6,271 nt of DNA from Prasinococcaceae sp. CCMP 1430. Lineage: Eukaryota > Plantae > Prasinodermophyta. Position numbers and translations under genes: made by a program. Where the stretch lies: contig RQSC01000966.1 of assembly GCA_013416795.1 (NCBI GenBank), positions 1 to 6,271 on the forward strand, written 5' to 3'. Positions 1 to 6,271 of the stretch are shown in pieces (positions within the stretch are counted from its first letter, which is position 1; each line of letters starts with the position of its first letter). The notes below the pieces were generated by a model. It saw nothing but the letters and a program-made list of their open reading frames with translations, did no database searches and had not been told where the DNA came from.

Positions 1-1
1 G

Positions 2-928
2 CAACCGACGCCAACGCCTCCTCCGAGCCCGCCTCCTCCCCCTCCCCCTCCTCCTCCGAGCCCGCCTCCGAACAAGGAAGAGAAGAAGACAAAGGTACGC
101 GCGCTGGTGCCTGCGCGCTTGCTCGTCGACACGGCGTGCCTCATCTGGCTGGCGCGAGCTGTATCGCACGGGGTGATGATGCTGACGCCAGTGCCAACGC
201 GCCGCGTGTTCTCTTCTGTGTGGTCTGGCCCTCCCGCGCTCACGCGTGCGCGCAAACGCTTCGCACGCCGCCGCCTGGTCGCCCGATCAATCGCACTTGC
301 GCGGCTGTGTCCTCCCCACCACGCACTGCGATGCGTGCTTGCCACCGCGGTCCATGCAAAACGTCAGAATACGAAGGACACGAAGGACACGAAGGACAAG
401 AAGGACAAGAAGGACAAGAAGGGCAAAAAGAAGCGCGAGATCGGCGAGAATGGCAACAAGGGCAAGAAGCGCTCGAAGAAGGACGTGAAGACTCCTCCAC
501 CGTCTTCTTCGAGGCCGCCTCTCCCTCACCCCCTTCCTCCTCCTTCTCCTCCTCCTTCTCCTCCGAGGCCGCCTCTCCCTCCTCCTCCTCCTCCTCCGAG
601 CCCGCCTCCGAAGAAGGCAGAGAAGAAGACAAAGGTACGCGCGCTGGTCCTTCAGCGCTTGCTTGTCGGCGCGGCGTGCCTCACCTGGCTGGCGCGAGCT
701 CTATCGCATGGGGTGATGATGCTGACGCCAGTGCCAACGCGCCGCATGTTTTCGTCCCCGTCGTCTGCCCCACCCACCCCCACGCTCACGCGCACACGCA
801 ATAAGCTCTCGAAGAAGCAGGTCAAGAAGCTCTGCAAGAAGGCAAAGAAGTCGAAGAAGAAGTGCAAGAAGGGCGACGCCAAGAAGAGCTGCAAGTTCAG
901 CAAGAAGAAGGGGTGCGTCCCCAAGTAG
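2..928 (+). CDS. Copy A: 5'-truncated nuclear gene for a Pro-rich (SPPP/SPPPP, extensin-like), Lys-rich protein with a C-terminal Lys/Cys domain; predicted exons 2-94, 368-634, 806-928
   Basis: Frame is open from 2 to TAG at 926-928. Spliced product: QPTPTPPPSPPPPPPPPPPSPPPNKEEKKTK / NTKDTKDTKDKKDKKDKKG...PPPSPPPKKAEKKTK / LSKKQVKKLCKKAKKSKKKCKKGDAKKSCKFSKKKGCVPK*. Lys is almost always AAG, typical of GC-rich nuclear genes. Both predicted introns are phase 0 with AAG|GTACGC donors. Function is inferred from composition only. Confidence 0.7.
   Translation, partial: QPTPTPPPSPPPPPPPPPPSPPPNKEEKKTKVRALVPARLLVDTACLIWLARAVSHGVMMLTPVPTRRVFSSVWSGPPALTRARKRFARRRLVARSIALARLCPPHHALRCVLATAVHAKRQNTKDTKDTKDKKDKKDKKGKKKREIGENGNKGKKRSKKDVKTPPPSSSRPPLPHPLPPPSPPPSPPRPPLPPPPPPPSPPPKKAEKKTKVRALVLQRLLVGAACLTWLARALSHGVMMLTPVPTRRMFSSPSSAPPTPTLTRTRNKLSKKQVKKLCKKAKKSKKKCKKGDAKKSCKFSKKKGCVPK
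95..367 (+). other. Predicted spliceosomal intron A1 (273 nt, phase 0)
   Basis: Donor AAG|GTACGC at 95; acceptor CGTCAG| at 367; no AG dinucleotide between 192 and 365. The first ~150 nt are homologous to intron A2. Amino-acid composition switches abruptly from K/P-rich at both boundaries. Confidence 0.65.
371..424 (+). repeat. 9-nt coding tandem repeat (A(C/A)GAAGG(A/G)C x6) encoding TKD TKD TKD KKD KKD KKG
   Basis: Six consecutive units read directly at 371-424. Confidence 0.85.
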
Positions 929-942
929 GCGCGCCAGCTGGC
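613..942 (+). repeat. 330-nt exact direct repeat, second copy at 5732-6061 (offset 5119)
   Basis: Base-by-base comparison by eye: exon end, intron, last exon and first 14 nt of the 3' UTR are identical. The first mismatch is 943 G versus 6062 A. Looser similarity continues about 50 nt further. Confidence 0.9.
635..805 (+). other. Predicted spliceosomal intron A2 (171 nt, phase 0)
   Basis: Donor AAG|GTACGC at 635; branch-like GCTCAC at 784-789; first downstream AG at 804-805 (AATAAG|CTC). An alternative in-frame acceptor CAG lies at 818-820. Confidence 0.7.
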
Positions 943-1139
943 GCCAAACAAACAGAAACACAAACAAACAATGTGAAACCGCACGCGAACACACGCCCTC
1001 AAAACGCCCAGCCAACCTTCGGTACCAACCAACCGCCGAGCGGAAGGGGAAGGCCGTTCACGGCGGCGGGCACATCGGGTTCGAATTTTGGCGAGGGGCC
1101 GCAGCGCGCGCGCGTGCGCGCGCCGCAGCCGCGCGGCGC

Positions 1140-1523
1140 AGAGTTTACAACAGTGCGCTGTCAACCTCCTTCACGCGGTGTCGCTGCATCAGGGTTTCCC
1201 CCAGTGTGCAAGATTCTTCACTGCTGCCCTGATTTCAGGTCTGAGCCCTTTTCAGTTCCAGTGTGGCTGATCATACTCTCATACCAGCGACGGATCATCG
1301 GCTAGGATGGGCACAAACCACCTACGACCTAATCCGAAACAGGACCCTCCAAAGGCGGATGCTTCCTTTCCAAACATTCGGGGGACTCTCTCCCTTGGTT
1401 TTTCCTTTGGGTAGTCTTCCTGTCTATTACTCACCCGGACGCCCTGAGCATTGCCCAGTCGACTTGCATGTGTTAGACGCACCGCCAGCGTTCCATCTGG
1501 GCCAGGATCAAACCCGTCCTTTC
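1140..1523 (-). rRNA. rns: Mitochondrial small-subunit rRNA, 5' ~385 nt only (truncated at about E. coli position 435 by the junction)
   Basis: Minus strand reads GGGTTTGATCCTGGCCCAGATGGAACGCTGGCGG...CTAACACATGCAAGTCG...GGGTGAGTAA...CAGCCACACTGGAACTGA...GGCAGCAGTGAAGAATCTTGCAC...GTTGTAAACTCT, collinear with bacterial 16S 5' domain landmarks. The 5' end is estimated. Confidence 0.95.
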
Positions 1524-1559
1524 ACGAATAGTTCTTTTTTCTGGTTTTTTCTCTTTTCT

Positions 1560-1703
1560 CCTGTGGTCGGAGAAGAAAGAAAGATTCAGAGTGGACCACA
1601 TAGAGTCTCTGAGGATCCTACTAGACCTTAAAGGGTCGTTGGTGTCCTGCGGGTGAAGATTCTTTCCCGCATAGAGTGGTCTGTTCGAAGGCAGCTTTGG
1701 TGT
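1560..1703 (-). mobile_element. 5' half of a group I intron inserted after LSU U1931 (P1, P3-P6, P7 5' strand, P3'; ends in the P8 region), no homing endonuclease ORF
   Basis: P1: exon AAGGU|A pairs with UGCCUU (1693-1688), with U.G at the splice site. GCU (1695-1693) fits P10 with the expected 3' exon start AGC. P3 GACCAC (1681-1676) pairs with GUGGUC (1599-1594). P4 UGCGGG (1671-1666) pairs with CCCGCA (1653-1648). P6 GGA/UCC; P6 hairpin GACC-CUUUAA-GGUC; R element UCAGAGACUCUA (1612-1601). The 3' boundary is approximate. Confidence 0.85.
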
Positions 1704-3550
1704 ACCTTAGTACTGTCAGTGATACAGCAGCCATTGGCCCGGTTTTCGATTTCCGGCAAACACCGGTCCTGTACAACGACGGGCATTGGGCACACGTCAG
1801 TCCCTATACGTCGTCTTTCGACTTTGCAGAGACCTGTGGTTTTAATAACCAGTCCCCGGCCACATTTTTCTGCGACTCCAGTCAGACTGGAGCCCTCCTT
1901 CTTGCGAACGTACGGAGTGAATTTGCCGAGTTCCTTAACCATGGGTCTCTCGACGCCTGAGTCTGTTCGACCCGCGCACCAGTGTCGGTTTAGGTACGGA
2001 TACAGGGTTTTTGAACTTTTCCTGGACCTTCTTTTCTCAGACCTTTCTTCCCAAAGAAAAAACCTCAAAGAAAGAAAGCCGTCCTTCAAAAACATCCTCC
2101 ATCAAAGTGAGACTTCTCTCATCTTCTTAGGATCCGTGTCTTCCACAGATGGTCAACAGTGCTGTGGAACCCGTGCGCATACGGCGACGGGGATTGGCTC
2201 CCCGAGCCTCGTTACTCATGTCAGCATGCTCACTCCCGAGTCCTCCAGAAAAAGTATCCTTTTTCCTTCAAAGGAACACAGGACGCTCCGCTACCAGAAC
2301 GAATCGTTCTCCGTCGTTTCGGTGGTGCCCTTCAGTCCCGAGTATGGTCGGCGCCAAAAAACTCATTCAGTGCGCTGGTACGCGATCATCATAGAACGGC
2401 TGCTTCCAAGCCCATCTCCTGAATGTCTCTGTTTTCTGACTTCCTTGCGCACTCAGGGCACACTTTGGGACCTTAACGGACGGTCTGGGCTCTTCCCCTC
2501 TCGACCCTGGACCTTCGCGCCCAGAGTCTGTACAGATACCCACCCTTTGTCGGCCTTCGGAGTTTTCTTGGACTTCGTAAAGGTTTGGGCTCCCGTCATC
2601 CAACAAGTGCTCTACCTCCGAAAAGGAGTCTGGGTCTAGTCTACCTACATAGATTTCGCGGAGAACCAGCTATCACCAGGCTTGGTAAGCCTTTCACTCC
2701 TTTCCACCCCTCATCCGAGAATTTTGCCACATTCACCGGTTCGGTCCTCCATCGAAAGACTTTCGACTTCAACCTGGAGATGGAAAGCTCGCCTGGCTTC
2801 GGGTCGTACACCCCCTATACACAGAAAAGAAAGAAAAAACCCTTATCGCATACGCTCAAGAGAAAATCCTTTCTTTGAAAACCAAGAAAGAAGCCTTTGT
2901 AAACTCGGGTTTCCTCCTGCCTCCACCTTTGGGCTCAAGCCTTGGTTTTTTTTTGTACAGGTGAATCTACACTCGCTGACCCATTATGCAAAAGGTACGC
3001 CGTCACCATGTCTGGCTCCGACCGTTTGATGTGCACCAGGATTCAGGTTCTTTTCAAGTCCTCATTCTTCGGAAGAAGTCTTCCGGATCGGTTCTTTTCA
3101 CCCTTCCCTCACGGTACATCCTGCGCTATCGGTTCTTCTAGGTATCCAACCTTCAGAGGGTGGTCCCCCTGTCTTCCATCGGTGTGATCCGATGTACTCA
3201 TTCTTTTCTCTGTCGACCCAGTCTTTCCTGTACAGGGCTTTCACCTTCTTTGGCCCGGGATTCCACCACGGTTCAAGAAAAGAAGAAGGTCGACCTTCTT
3301 TGGGGTTTTTCACCAAAAAAAGAGAGGTTTGGTCCGGGGTCGATCACATCTACTGCCGGAGTCTCGGTTGATCAGTCTTCCTCGGGGTACTGAGATGTTT
3401 CACTTCCCCCGGTGTTTGTTCTGTCTGAGCTTGTGCTCTTGGGAAATCAAAACTTTGTCGCGGTGTGCTAAAGTTTTGCCTTTCGTTTTGGTGTACGTCC
3501 CTTTCCTAGAAGACCAGGGCATCCCCCTGGTGCATCCTCTCTCTCTACGA
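1704..3550 (-). rRNA. rnl: Mitochondrial large-subunit rRNA, exon/module 1 (E. coli-equivalent ~1-1931); domains beyond 1931 are absent from the window
   Basis: Collinear 23S landmarks on the minus strand: GGATGCCCTGG, GGGGAAGTGAAACATCTCAGTACCC, GTACCGTGAGGGAAGG, CGTACCTTTTGCATAATGGGTCAGCG, GATAGCTGGTTCTCCGCGAAA, GGCTTGGAAGCAGCC (GTPase centre), AAACCGACACTGGTG, AAGGAACTCGGCAAA, H69, then CTAAGGT. The 5' end is estimated to within about 10 nt. Confidence 0.95.
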
Positions 3551-3573
3551 TTCCACGAATACTTTTTCAGCGG

Positions 3574-3646
3574 TAGCAGCGGTGGGGATCGAACCCACGG
3601 CCCTAGGAGTATGAATCCTATGCTCGTACCACTGAGCTACACTGCC
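3574..3646 (-). tRNA. trnM: tRNA-Met(CAU), probably elongator
   Basis: GGCAGTG/CGCTGCT acceptor stem, GCTC/GAGC D stem, TAGGA-TTCATAC-TCCTA anticodon arm, GTGGG-TTCGATC-CCCAC T arm. It lacks the three consecutive G-C pairs of initiator tRNA. A lysidine tRNA-Ile(CAU) is not fully excluded. Confidence 0.9.
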
Positions 3647-3651
3647 AAAGT

Positions 3652-3755
3652 GGAAAGCCCTCCATCGCGGTCCCAGTCTTCCGGTACAGCGAACCTTCAG
3701 AAAAAGACGGGTCGAAAAAGGATCGTGTAGGTTTTTCTGAATGCACTGACTTCCC
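3652..3755 (-). rRNA. rrn5: Mitochondrial 5S rRNA (divergent)
   Basis: Helix I GGGAAGUC/GGCUUUCC; helix II UUCAGAAAAA/UUUUUCUGAA; helix III ACG/CGU closing loop-C-like AUCCUUUUUCGACC; loop-E-like UGUA, with CCGG-AAGA-CUGG helix IV. Length ~104 nt; it lies in an rRNA/tRNA cluster. Confidence 0.75.
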
Positions 3756-3882
3756 TAGAGGCGGTCTATGAAGATCTTTCTTTTGTTTTTCTGTCTGCGA
3801 CCGGTTTAATGGTGACACTTTGTCCGGTCTCTTGAAAGGATTCTTTCTCTTTCGCTTTTTTCTTTAAAAAAGTCCGGTTTTG

Positions 3883-4659
3883 ATGCTCATCCTGTACACA
3901 CTTATGGTTTTCAGTCCTTTGGAACAGTTCGCCATCATTCGACTTCTCACCCTTCGGGTTGGAGGGCTCGATCTTTCCATCACAAACTCCTTCCTCATGA
4001 CCGTTTTGGGGTTGAGTCTGCTTTTGGGTGCCTATGTTTACACCCTTCAAGGAACAGGAGGAAAGCTTGTTCCGACCTACACCCAGGTCTGTGTGGAGTC
4101 TCAGTATACCTTTATCAAAGGGTTGGTTGGAGACCAACTTGGAAAGGAAGGGTATCCCTACCTTTCTCTTATCTATGTGGTCTTTACCTTGATTCTGGGA
4201 TGTAACCTTATCGGAATGGTTCCCTATTCCTTTACACCGACCTCCCACTTTATCTTTACCCTTGGATTGTCCCTTTCCCTCTTTATTGGGCTTGTGATTA
4301 TTGGGTTCTCACGCCATGGGCTTCACTTCTTTAGCCTCCTTCTTCCTGCAGGAACCCCTCTTGGACTTGCACCCTTCCTTGTTCTTCTTGAACTGATTTC
4401 CTATGTCTTTAAGGTGATCAGTCTTGGGGTTCGACTCGCAGCAAACATGCTTGCGGGACACTGTCTTTTGAAGATTCTTGCTGGGTTTGTATGGACTATG
4501 GTTCTGAGTGGGTCACCTTTGCTTATGCTTGCGGGAAGTCTTCCCTTTGGAGCCATTGTTATCTTGACCGGAGTGGAATTCGGAATTGCAGGGATTCAGG
4601 CATACGTGTTTACTATGCTTTTCTGTATCTACCTTCAAGAGGCTTTGAACCTTCACTGA
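3883..4659 (+). CDS. atp6: ATP synthase F0 subunit a (mitochondrial); ATG 3883, alternative ATG 3904
   Basis: N-terminal FSPLEQF, NLIGMVPYSFTPTSH, essential-Arg motif SLGVRLAANMLAGH, IQAYVFTMLFCIYL and C-terminal LNLH, then TGA 4657-4659. No frameshifts or internal stops. Confidence 0.97.
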   Translation: MLILYTLMVFSPLEQFAIIRLLTLRVGGLDLSITNSFLMTVLGLSLLLGAYVYTLQGTGGKLVPTYTQVCVESQYTFIKGLVGDQLGKEGYPYLSLIYVVFTLILGCNLIGMVPYSFTPTSHFIFTLGLSLSLFIGLVIIGFSRHGLHFFSLLLPAGTPLGLAPFLVLLELISYVFKVISLGVRLAANMLAGHCLLKILAGFVWTMVLSGSPLLMLAGSLPFGAIVILTGVEFGIAGIQAYVFTMLFCIYLQEALNLH

Positions 4660-4668
4660 GGATAGAAC

Positions 4669-4741
4669 GCGCCTATAGCTCAATGGATAGGGCGTCGCAC
4701 TTCGGATGCGAAGATTGAGGGTTCGAGTCCTTCTAGGCGTA
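4669..4741 (+). tRNA. trnR: tRNA-Arg(UCG)
   Basis: GCGCCTA/TAGGCGT acceptor stem; TCGCA-CTTCGGA-TGCGA anticodon arm; GAGGG-TTCGAGT-CCTTC T arm. Confidence 0.93.
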
Positions 4742-4796
4742 GACTCCTTTCCTTTTCCCAGACCCTCAAGTGTGTGCACCCTTTTCCCAGCCTTTG

Positions 4797-4869
4797 GAGC
4801 CTGTAGCTCAGTCGGGAGAGCGCACCCTTGATAAGGGTGAGGTCCGTTGTTCGAACCAACGTAGGCTCA
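4797..4869 (+). tRNA. trnI: tRNA-Ile(GAU)
   Basis: GAGCCTG/TAGGCTC acceptor stem; CACCC-TTGATAA-GGGTG anticodon arm; CGTTG-TTCGAAC-CAACG T arm. Confidence 0.95.
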
Positions 4870-4874
4870 GATTT

Positions 4875-4946
4875 GGAAGGATAGTTTCAATGGTAAAATG
4901 GCGGTCTCCAAAACCGGCGTTGGGGGTTCGAGCCCCTCTCCTTCTG
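4875..4946 (+). tRNA. trnW: tRNA-Trp(CCA)
   Basis: GGAAGGA/TCCTTCT acceptor stem; (G)CGGT-CTCCAAA-ACCG(G) anticodon arm with one G-G mismatch; GGGGG-TTCGAGC-CCCTC T arm. Confidence 0.9.
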
Positions 4947-4991
4947 AAGAAGGTTCTCAGAAAGAAACCCGTCATCTGACCGAGAAAGAAG

Positions 4992-5063
4992 GCTCCCTTC
5001 GTCTAGGGGTAAGGACATAACCTTTTCGAGGTTGAAACACGGGTTCGAATCCCGTAGGGAGCA
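4992..5063 (+). tRNA. trnE: tRNA-Glu(UUC)
   Basis: GCTCCCT/AGGGAGC acceptor stem; TAACC-TTTTCGA-GGTTG anticodon arm; ACGGG-TTCGAAT-CCCGT T arm. Confidence 0.93.
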
Positions 5064-5065
5064 GG

Positions 5066-5110
5066 AAAGAAAGGAAGTCTTTCTTTTTTCAGACTCTTTT
5101 TTCTGAAAAA
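5066..5110 (+). other. Two adjacent AT-rich hairpins just downstream of trnE (possible processing or termination signal)
   Basis: AAAGAAAG (5066-5073) pairs with CTTTCTTT (5079-5086), and TTTTTCAGA (5085-5093) pairs with TCTGAAAAA (5102-5110). Function is not demonstrated. Confidence 0.35.
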
Positions 5111-5197
5111 CTCAGTCTTTTTTCTTGTGTTTCCCTTTCTTTTTCTTTTGTACAGAAAGAAAGCTTCCACCAGTCTCCTTTTTCTTTCTTTGACTGA

Positions 5198-5272
5198 ATG
5201 ACACTTCTTACCTTTGTCTTCCAACTTACCCAGATTCTTGGTCTTCTTCTTCCTTTGTTGATTGCGGTTGCN
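5198..5272 (+). CDS. nad1: NADH dehydrogenase subunit 1, N-terminal 25 codons only, cut at the N
   Basis: MTLLTFVFQLTQILGLLLPLLIAVA resembles the hydrophobic Nad1 start that normally continues (Y/F)xTLxERK. It has the same T/C-rich codon style as atp6. It is short, so the assignment is tentative. Confidence 0.65.
5272..5272. other. Ambiguous base N, probable scaffold/contig join between the mitochondrial and nuclear sequences
   Basis: The only N in the window; it falls exactly at the switch from nad1 to the GC-rich 15-mer array. Confidence 0.8.
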
Positions 5273-5465
5273 GAGCCCGCCTCCTCCGAGCCCGCCTCCT
5301 CCGAGCCCGCCTCCTCCGAGCCCGCCTCCTCCGAGCCCGCCTCCTCCGAGCCCGCCTCCTCCGAGCCCGCCTCCTCCGAGCCCGCCTCCTCCGAGCCCGC
5401 CTCCTCCCAGGCCGCCTCCTCCGAGCCCGCCTCCTCCGAGCCCTCCTCCTCCGAGCCCGCCTCCG
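5273..5465 (+). repeat. 15-nt coding tandem repeat GAGCCCGCCTCCTCC, 12 full units plus a partial one, encoding (SPPPP)n
   Basis: Units 1-9 and 11 are perfect; unit 10 is CAGGCCGCCTCCTCC (RPPPP); unit 12 is GAGCCCTCCTCCTCC. Confidence 0.95.
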
Positions 5466-6047
5466 AAGAAGGCAGGGAAGGACACGAAGGACAAAAAGAA
5501 GGGCAAAAAGAAGGGCGAGAACGGCGAGAGTGGCAGCAAGGGCAAGACGCCCTCGAAGGAGGACATGAAGGCTCCTCCACCGTCTCCGCCGAGGCCGCCT
5601 CTCCCTCCTCCTCTTCCTCCTCCGAGCCCGCCACCGAAGAAGGCAGAGAAGAAGACAAAGGTACGCGCGCTGGTCCCTCAGCGCTTGCTTGTCGGCGCGG
5701 CGTGCCTCACCTGGCTGGCGCGAGCTCTATCGAAGGCAGAGAAGAAGACAAAGGTACGCGCGCTGGTCCTTCAGCGCTTGCTTGTCGGCGCGGCGTGCCT
5801 CACCTGGCTGGCGCGAGCTCTATCGCATGGGGTGATGATGCTGACGCCAGTGCCAACGCGCCGCATGTTTTCGTCCCCGTCGTCTGCCCCACCCACCCCC
5901 ACGCTCACGCGCACACGCAATAAGCTCTCGAAGAAGCAGGTCAAGAAGCTCTGCAAGAAGGCAAAGAAGTCGAAGAAGAAGTGCAAGAAGGGCGACGCCA
6001 AGAAGAGCTGCAAGTTCAGCAAGAAGAAGGGGTGCGTCCCCAAGTAG
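5274..6047 (+). CDS. Copy B: 5'-truncated paralog of copy A; predicted exons 5274-5660 and 5925-6047
   Basis: (SPPPP)n-KKAGKDTKDKKKGKKKGENGESGSKGK...PPPSPPPKKAEKKTK, then the same 40-aa Lys/Cys last exon and TAG at 6045-6047. Confidence 0.7.
   Translation, partial: SPPPPSPPPPSPPPPSPPPPSPPPPSPPPPSPPPPSPPPPSPPPPRPPPPSPPPPSPPPPSPPPKKAGKDTKDKKKGKKKGENGESGSKGKTPSKEDMKAPPPSPPRPPLPPPLPPPSPPPKKAEKKTKVRALVPQRLLVGAACLTWLARALSKAEKKTKVRALVLQRLLVGAACLTWLARALSHGVMMLTPVPTRRMFSSPSSAPPTPTLTRTRNKLSKKQVKKLCKKAKKSKKKCKKGDAKKSCKFSKKKGCVPK
5639..5824 (+). repeat. 93-nt tandem duplication spanning the exon end and 5' splice site (5639-5731 / 5732-5824)
   Basis: GAAGGCAGAGAAGAAGACAAAG|GTACGC...GCTCTATC occurs twice, with one difference (GTCCCTCAG versus GTCCTTCAG). 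Confidence 0.9.
5661..5924 (+). other. Predicted intron of copy B with two tandem donors (5661 and 5754) and acceptor at 5924
   Basis: 5754-5924 is identical to intron A2; 5661-5731 is a duplicated 5' part of the same intron. Confidence 0.6.
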
Positions 6048-6271
6048 GCGCGCCAGCTGGCACCAAACAAACAGAAACACAAACAATTTGAAACAGCACA
6101 CGAACACAAGCACTCTAGCTAGGGGGCTGGAAGATCCGACCCTGGTTTTCCTCCTTTTCTCTACTGTACGATTGATACTGTGCAAACCACACTTTGTTGT
6201 TCATTTGCGCGCGCGCCCTGACCACGGCAGCGCACAGCAGCCGCCGCCCGGCGCCGCCGCCCGGCGGCGGC

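Follow-up and report, generated by a model that had tools for sequence, protein, structure and literature searches.

Known split and continuous introns at LSU site 1931

The closest described system is found in the mitochondrial DNA (mtDNA) of the marine green alga Prasinoderma coloniale, strain CCMP 1220 (GenBank KF387569; Pombert, Otis, Turmel & Lemieux 2013, PMC3873408). Its rnl gene, encoding the large subunit ribosomal RNA (LSU rRNA), is interrupted at sites 1931-1932 and 2500-2501 by two group I introns of type IB4, both spliced in trans. The first of them, Pr.rnl.1, is split in loop L8, and its 3' nucleotides are too few to form P9. The rns gene, encoding the small subunit (SSU) rRNA, lies between exons a and b of rnl on one strand, while the opposite strand carries exon c, between cob and rps12. 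In the same strain, a contiguous rnl RNA was shown by reverse transcription polymerase chain reaction (RT-PCR) and sequencing, and the rnl/rns junction of the published genome was confirmed with genomic PCR across rns. This mtDNA is also unusually GC-rich and carries a trnR(ucg)-trnI(gau) cluster (PMC3873408). The other mitochondrial genome described, that of Prasinoderma sp. MBIC 10622, is intronless (PMC7748750). Here, we analysed a stretch of DNA of 6,271 nucleotides (nt) from Prasinococcaceae sp. CCMP 1430 (assembly GCA_013416795.1, contig RQSC01000966.1, positions 1 to 6,271), hereafter called the window. We read positions 1594-1703 of its minus strand as the 5' half of Pr.rnl.1, in a copy set in a non-mitochondrial context, either a nuclear insertion of mtDNA (NUMT) or a chimera; we put the probability of this reading at about 90%. 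The element is already known, having been published in 2013 (PMC3873408), and matters little as a discovery. The minor new facts are the split arrangement in a distinct oceanic lineage and the mosaic nature of the window, part mitochondrial and part nuclear.

The likeness to Pr.rnl.1 concerns the insertion site 1931, the breakpoint in L8, the gene order, the absence of P9 and a second split intron at site 2500. The cluster of transfer RNA (tRNA) genes trnR(ucg)-trnI(gau) of P. coloniale is also found in the window. Compared with strain CCMP 1220, 11 of the 258 residues of the atp6 protein differ, and two published rnl-a primers are off at 1 and 3 positions, respectively. Moreover, unlike the published intron, the window copy stands outside its mitochondrial context and is truncated in rns and nad1.

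Two other groups of introns can be compared with this locus. Cis-spliced introns at site 1931 of LSU rRNA genes are found in organelles and bacteria, for example in the mitochondrial rnl gene of Nephroselmis olivacea (intron 1) and in the chloroplast intron encoding I-CpaI; they share both the insertion site and an IB4-type core with the present intron (PMC3873408). Many of them hold a LAGLIDADG open reading frame (ORF) in L8, the very loop that is broken here (PMC3873408). Whereas these introns are continuous, possess P9 and in many cases encode a homing endonuclease, the present one, compared by description, is split and has neither ORF nor P9. The second group comprises the other two-piece group I ribozymes, with a break in L8 or L9 and reassembly by base pairing (Table 3 of PMC3873408). 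These ribozymes sit at different sites in a protein-coding gene, in contrast to the rRNA gene concerned here, and their halves are usually dispersed, whereas here a single gene separates them on the same strand.

The 5' half of the intron in the window

A first reading of the window, made by a model without database searches (hereafter the sequence-only reading), had claimed that rnl matches 23S rRNA continuously up to CUAAGGU and then gives way to half of a group I intron at L1931, which it cited as a known group I insertion site. The features that bear on this claim are the following; intron nucleotide k corresponds to window position 1704-k (minus strand).

1704..3549, minus strand: rnl exon a, E. 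coli 23S positions about 1-1931 (Rfam RF02541, 992 bits)
1594..1703, minus strand: probable 5' half of group I intron Pr.rnl.1, read from the sequence, with a layout that agrees with PMC3873408
1708-1704 / 1692-1688: P1, exon AAGGU with GCCUU; U1704.G1692 at the splice site
1695-1693: L1/P10 guide GCU, directly 5' of the P1 3' strand
1681-1676 / 1599-1594: P3, GACCAC with GUGGUC
1671-1666 / 1653-1648: P4, UGCGGG with CCCGCA
within 1594..1703: a small P5
1637-1634 / 1627-1624: P6, GACC with GGUC
1612-1604: R element UCAGAGACU, holding the P7 5' strand
1581..1590, minus strand: P8 5' strand UCUGAAUCUU, complementary to GAGAUUUCAGA of the 3' half in related mitochondrial contigs
1540..1590, minus strand: hairpin in the tail of the 5' half (L8 remnant), -17.8 kcal/mol, z = -2.84
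1524..1539, minus strand: spacer before rns
1142..1523, minus strand: 5' part of rns (Rfam RF00177), model position 1 aligning at 1523

The match of the minus strand to the bacterial LSU model of Rfam begins at 3549 and extends to about 1600. When restricted to positions 1480-1800, the alignment is good up to GUACUAAGGUA, genuine as far as CUAAGGUA, and noise beyond, so that the U of CUAAGGU at window position 1704 equates to E. coli U1931, as first claimed. P1 with its U.G pair, the GCU guide, P3, P4, P6 and the R motif were all found on the minus strand, P4 being set in good P and Q consensus elements. An unconstrained minimum free energy fold of 1594-1716 yields P1, P3, P4 and P6. Its energy is unexceptional (z = -1.46, not significant alone), and the support for the 5' half therefore comes from its group I architecture rather than from thermodynamics. 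Between 1594 and the start of rns at 1523, neither a P7 3' strand nor a terminal G or a 3' exon was found; this tail is 70 nt long, and the sequence-only reading saw no P9 in it either.

The hairpin at 1540-1590, just upstream of rns, is kept in all the contigs described below. It overlaps with the P8 strand at its base, and the upper part can exist together with a P8 formed in trans (a constrained cofold keeps the upper stem). This hairpin could be a remnant of L8 or a processing signal for the 5' end of rns.

The 3' half in mitochondrial contigs

Using an exact look-up of atp6 and a metagenome scan with a 35-nt intron word, we gathered 18 contigs from Logan, Tara Oceans, JGI and ENA. The window's atp6 protein is present unchanged on mitochondrial contigs, and the whole 231-nt stretch comprising the end of exon a, the half intron, the spacer and the start of rns was recovered in 15 independently assembled contigs. 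In these contigs, of up to 35.6 kb, the junction of rnl-a, half intron and rns sits inside otherwise normal mtDNA. As 15 contigs share it, the adjacency of rnl-a and rns belongs to genuine mtDNA and is no assembly accident. The opposite scenario, which the sequence-only reading had named as its own refutation, is that this adjacency results from a NUMT or a misassembly, the true mtDNA bearing an ordinary cis intron at site 1931. It is true that mitochondrial and nuclear-type sequences are demonstrably joined in the window, one of the junctions being an 'n'. However, the same junction is shown by contigs assembled independently from Tara Oceans, JGI, ENA and Logan data, it exists in the published genome, where genomic PCR across rns was performed (PMC3873408), and the breakpoints of the mosaic, at 1142 and 5271, lie away from the intron. 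We consider that this scenario can practically be dismissed.

In contigs L007 and L009, Rfam matches follow one another on a single strand in the order trnM, rnl-a, complete rns, rnl-b and a match to the group I intron model RF00028. In the longer contigs, the 3' half of the intron follows rns at a distance of 626 nt, with the sequence GACAGUCUUUCGGUGGAAAAACUGUC GAGAUUUCAGAUGG AAAAGCGC GUCC AUUCAACG, continued across the splice site by AGCGAAAUUCCUUGUCG. It is made of the P8 partner UUCAGA/GAGA, a J8/7-P7' segment AAAAGCGCGUCC, 8 nt, the terminal G and exon b (AGCGAAAUUCC); in L007 and L009, the end of the half and the exon junction, located after rns, read GAGAUUUCAGAUGGAAAAGCGCGUCCAUUCAACG and then AGCGAAAUUCC. 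The elements GAGAUUUCAGA and AAAAGCGCGUCCAUUCAACG, the latter directly followed by AGCGAAAU, are present in L004, L006, L007, L009-L016 and L018. Exon b thus begins with AGCGAAAU, whose AGC complements the GCU guide (P10), and in the related contigs the terminal G stands next to this 3' exon. No P9 helix was found in the 3' half, where merely 8 nt separate the GUCC of P7' from the terminal G. The last 110 nt or so before exon b are conserved even in L018, the most divergent contig, while the sequence further upstream diverges there.

The sequence-only reading had predicted both the split ribozyme and its missing partner from the raw sequence, and on these two points it is borne out by the contigs and by PMC3873408. 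The break in P8/L8 is the published breakpoint, a P8 partner exists in the related contigs, and the bipartite intron at L1931 corresponds to the one described and confirmed by RT-PCR in P. coloniale. The predicted partner was recovered with its P8 complement, its J8/7-P7' ending in GUCC, its terminal G and an exon starting with AGC; the P9 hairpin that had been expected is replaced by the 8 nt mentioned above. Exon b is encoded separately, as proposed, yet it is not distant: it comes soon after rns and shares its strand.

Two observations can be added on the surroundings of the 3' half. A perfect hairpin of 6 bp, GACAGU...ACUGUC, stands directly 5' of the P8 3' strand (L007, 2385-2415, minus strand), and about 75 more conserved nt are found upstream of it, beyond the needs of a minimal core.

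A second split group I intron, at site 2500, comes after rnl-b; its match of 55.9 bits to RF00028 in L007 and L009 lies directly after GGCACCU. The remaining features read on these contigs are the following.

L007 1615-1848, minus strand: second split intron
L009 4839-5072, minus strand: second split intron
L009 2791-3184, plus strand: rnl exon c, on the opposite strand, between rps12 and cob

We then compared the window with the published strain. Its atp6 protein has 96% identity (247/258) with that of P. coloniale (V9PAC7/YP_008999859) and falls into the same 90% cluster. Primers 2 and 3 used for RT-PCR in PMC3873408, located in exon b, match at 22/22 positions in L004, L006 and L007, while the two rnl-a primers of the same study match the window at 21/22 (primer 4) and 19/22 (primer 5) positions. 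The atp6 and primer comparisons both indicate that the source is related very closely to the published strain without being identical to it. The split arrangement also occurs in an oceanic Prasinoderma lineage that is abundant and about 4% off CCMP 1220 in the atp6 protein, a difference which suggests that it is distinct from the sequenced strain. As to the occurrence of this lineage, it is widespread in ocean metagenomes (L009-L018 come from the Tara Oceans projects PRJEB4352/PRJEB1787 and from JGI and ENA marine sets), and the collection has 230 indexed blocks with the atp6 variant P0003, on contigs of up to 35.6 kb.

Proposed assembly and splicing of the two halves

The bipartite IB4 intron is placed after U1931 of the mitochondrial LSU rRNA gene of a P. 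coloniale-type alga. The true mtDNA carries on one strand trnM, rnl-a, the 5' half, rns, a spacer of about 550 nt, the 3' half and rnl-b, followed by the first part of the second split intron at site 2500; exon c is encoded on the opposite strand, between rps12 and cob. From the anatomy of the two halves and the published RT-PCR, we infer the following mechanism. The two halves would reassemble via the P8 helix and P7. P1, with its U.G pair at the splice site, and P10 (GCU:AGC) would bring the exons into line, and U1931 would be joined to A1932 by two transesterifications, as is usual. For an intron devoid of P9 and held together by weak trans helices, help from proteins is probably required, as the authors of PMC3873408 also argue.

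In this two-RNA model, built by hand, every pair is canonical. P8 is formed in trans by UCUGAA/UUCAGA and UCUU/GAGA with one bulged U, and in P7, GUCC of the 3' half pairs with the G[A]GAC found in the R element, leaving the canonical bulged A. When P1, P3-P6 and the trans P8 are enforced, the energy is -71.3 kcal/mol vs. -77.2 kcal/mol for the unconstrained cofold, i.e. 6 kcal/mol short, an enforced value that omits P7 and P10 (P3/P7 pseudoknot) as well as tertiary contacts. The enforced model leaves one hairpin per half, flanking P8, and a hairpin on either side of P8 is what would be expected from a break in L8. Among the contigs, P6 is lengthened by an A>G change in its loop. Two extra CA/UG pairs that we tried for P8 are not conserved, L018 showing an uncompensated UG>GA change. 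A comparison by RNAduplex of the 5' tail with the whole 626-nt spacer gave only sprawling duplexes, which were uninterpretable.

An alternative P7' was also considered, namely AGUCU within GGACAGUCUUUC; at 50 nt from the 3' end, it would give P9 enough space. We rejected it because it lies within the self-complementary hairpin GACAGU...ACUGUC, because J8/7 would shrink to 1 nt, and because PMC3873408 states that the 3' nucleotides are too few for P9.

Several results weigh against the identification as Pr.rnl.1 and have to be set beside those above. In the unconstrained RNAcofold structure, the trans P8 is not formed, and the gain from association is only -2.9 kcal/mol. The P8 duplex has an energy of -9.7 kcal/mol, for a mean of -5.8 kcal/mol in shuffled sequences, 4% of which equal it (P about 0.04). 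Covariation was sought among the 15 contigs and none was seen, the core helices being invariant. The group I model RF00028, a search for which the sequence-only reading had called, gave no match on 1480-1800 even at E<=10, this model expecting a whole intron, while the neighbouring second split intron, Pr.rnl.2, was matched by it. Moreover, the assignment of P7 and P8 was checked against the text of PMC3873408 only, and the evidence for splicing comes only from the published strain, 4% apart in the atp6 protein.

The collinearity of exon a, the 5' half, rns, the 3' half and exon b on one strand in every long contig raises the question of whether the halves ever part. Pr.rnl.1 might effectively be a cis intron of about 2.25 kb, with rns nested in L8 of a single precursor and splicing taking place before, or independently of, the excision of rns. 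No opposite-strand gene lies between exons a and b in the long contigs, and trans helices that are weak alone would be helped by tethering in one precursor. However, rns has to be freed as an RNA of its own, which would part the halves, and the poorly conserved spacer of about 550 nt before the 3' half could hold a promoter. In addition, the authors of PMC3873408, where co-transcription is merely touched on, class Pr.rnl.1 as trans-spliced. We regard this explanation as unlikely, without being negligible. Slightly less likely again is the stricter statement that the intron is not obligately trans-spliced and could function in cis, as an intron of 2.25 kb that houses the whole SSU rRNA gene in L8. 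If the nested arrangement were true, LSU splicing and SSU release would be coupled in one precursor.

The missing P9 and the weak trans pairing would also be in line with an LSU rRNA that is simply fragmented, in the manner of the scrambled mitochondrial rRNAs of the Chlamydomonas type, its unligated pieces associating in the ribosome via base pairing and the intron-like sequence being a dead remnant. Against this, the break falls at the conserved and functionally central site 1931/1932 rather than in a variable region, and nothing is damaged in the U.G pair, the GCU:AGC pairing, the terminal G or the elements P, Q, R and S-like, both ends of the break carrying matching group I elements. These core elements are invariant in contigs that differ by up to 4% elsewhere. 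Furthermore, ligated rnl was demonstrated in P. coloniale CCMP 1220 by RT-PCR and sequencing (PMC3873408). Simple fragmentation is thus very improbable, and a split intron that restores a contiguous LSU rRNA remains our preferred reading.

Origin of the window copy

What the sequence-only reading could not see is that mitochondrial sequence is confined to the centre of the window (1142-5271; 4,130 nt), delimited by homology to mitochondrial contigs; the flanks are of nuclear type, and rns is cut at 1142. Apart from the rRNA and intron features given above, the window is laid out as follows.

1..1141: left flank, GC-rich (0.57-0.68) and nuclear-type, with repeated low-complexity coding units
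1142..5271: mtDNA-derived block with the rns 5' part, half intron, rnl-a, trnM, atp6, trnR(ucg), trnI(gau), trnW, trnE and the start of nad1
3572-3646, minus strand: trnM
3883-4659, plus strand: atp6 ORF
5198-5271, plus strand: nad1, first 74 nt only
5272..6271: right flank, 'n' at 5272, then nuclear-type sequence

Over its 4,130 nt, the block shares 99.8% identity with L001/L002 and 98.4% with L007. The GC content is about 0.45-0.54 in the centre of the window vs. 0.57-0.70 at both ends. According to Rfam, the SSU rRNA in the window corresponds to its first third only, running down from 1523 on the minus strand. The mitochondrial homology breaks off sharply at 1142, within rns, and at 5271, within nad1, two genes that run on past these breakpoints in every mitochondrial contig. 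No homology to mitochondrial contigs was found for the flank 1..1141. The left junction (1141/1142) is continuous sequence, and the right one consists of the 'n' followed by a tandem repeat, in which the 15-nt unit GAGCCCGCCTCCTCC recurs about 12 times from 5273 on; such a combination makes this junction a typical place for contig breakage.

These features, namely the truncation of rns and nad1 at the ends of the block and the nuclear-type flanks on both sides, are what a NUMT would show, although the source sequence is only 6,271 nt long and the right junction is an 'n'. We looked up two ORFs spanning the left junction between nuclear and mitochondrial sequence in independent assemblies, and neither is on record. 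A recent NUMT is the somewhat favoured origin of the window copy; an assembly chimera, in the form of a chimeric mini-scaffold, is a rather less probable but quite credible one. Since the 4.1-kb mtDNA block sits inside nuclear-type repeats, the window copy is probably not the working, expressed one, and if it is a NUMT it would be inert. Over the 4,130-nt block, the window differs from all covering mitochondrial contigs at two positions only, 1245 and 4758. The substitution at 1245 changes an A-U pair of rns to A.C (on an rns alignment judged by eye), which is a weak hint of relaxed constraint. Whichever origin the window copy has, the intron finding reflects genuine mtDNA. Nevertheless, this 6.3-kb assembly piece is a mitochondrial/nuclear mosaic and is not to be read as an organelle locus.

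Flanking repeats and neighbouring genes

The units of the flanks have a coding potential of low complexity, Pro/Ser/Glu-rich and Lys-rich, and are tandemly duplicated. Positions 613-912 of the left flank are identical (100%) to positions 5732-6031 of the right flank. In the centre of the window, five tRNAs were mapped by Rfam.

Downstream of nad1, the mitochondrial contigs show two gene orders. In L009, L014 and L017, nad1 is followed by nad5-nad4-nad2-cox2-cox3 on the same strand. In L010-L013, L015 and L001, nad6 comes next, and after it cox3-cox2-nad2-nad4-nad5 on the other strand. Such a pair of orders would be explained by a position of nad1 near the end of the large inverted repeat, both junctions between the repeat and single-copy sequence being sampled separately.

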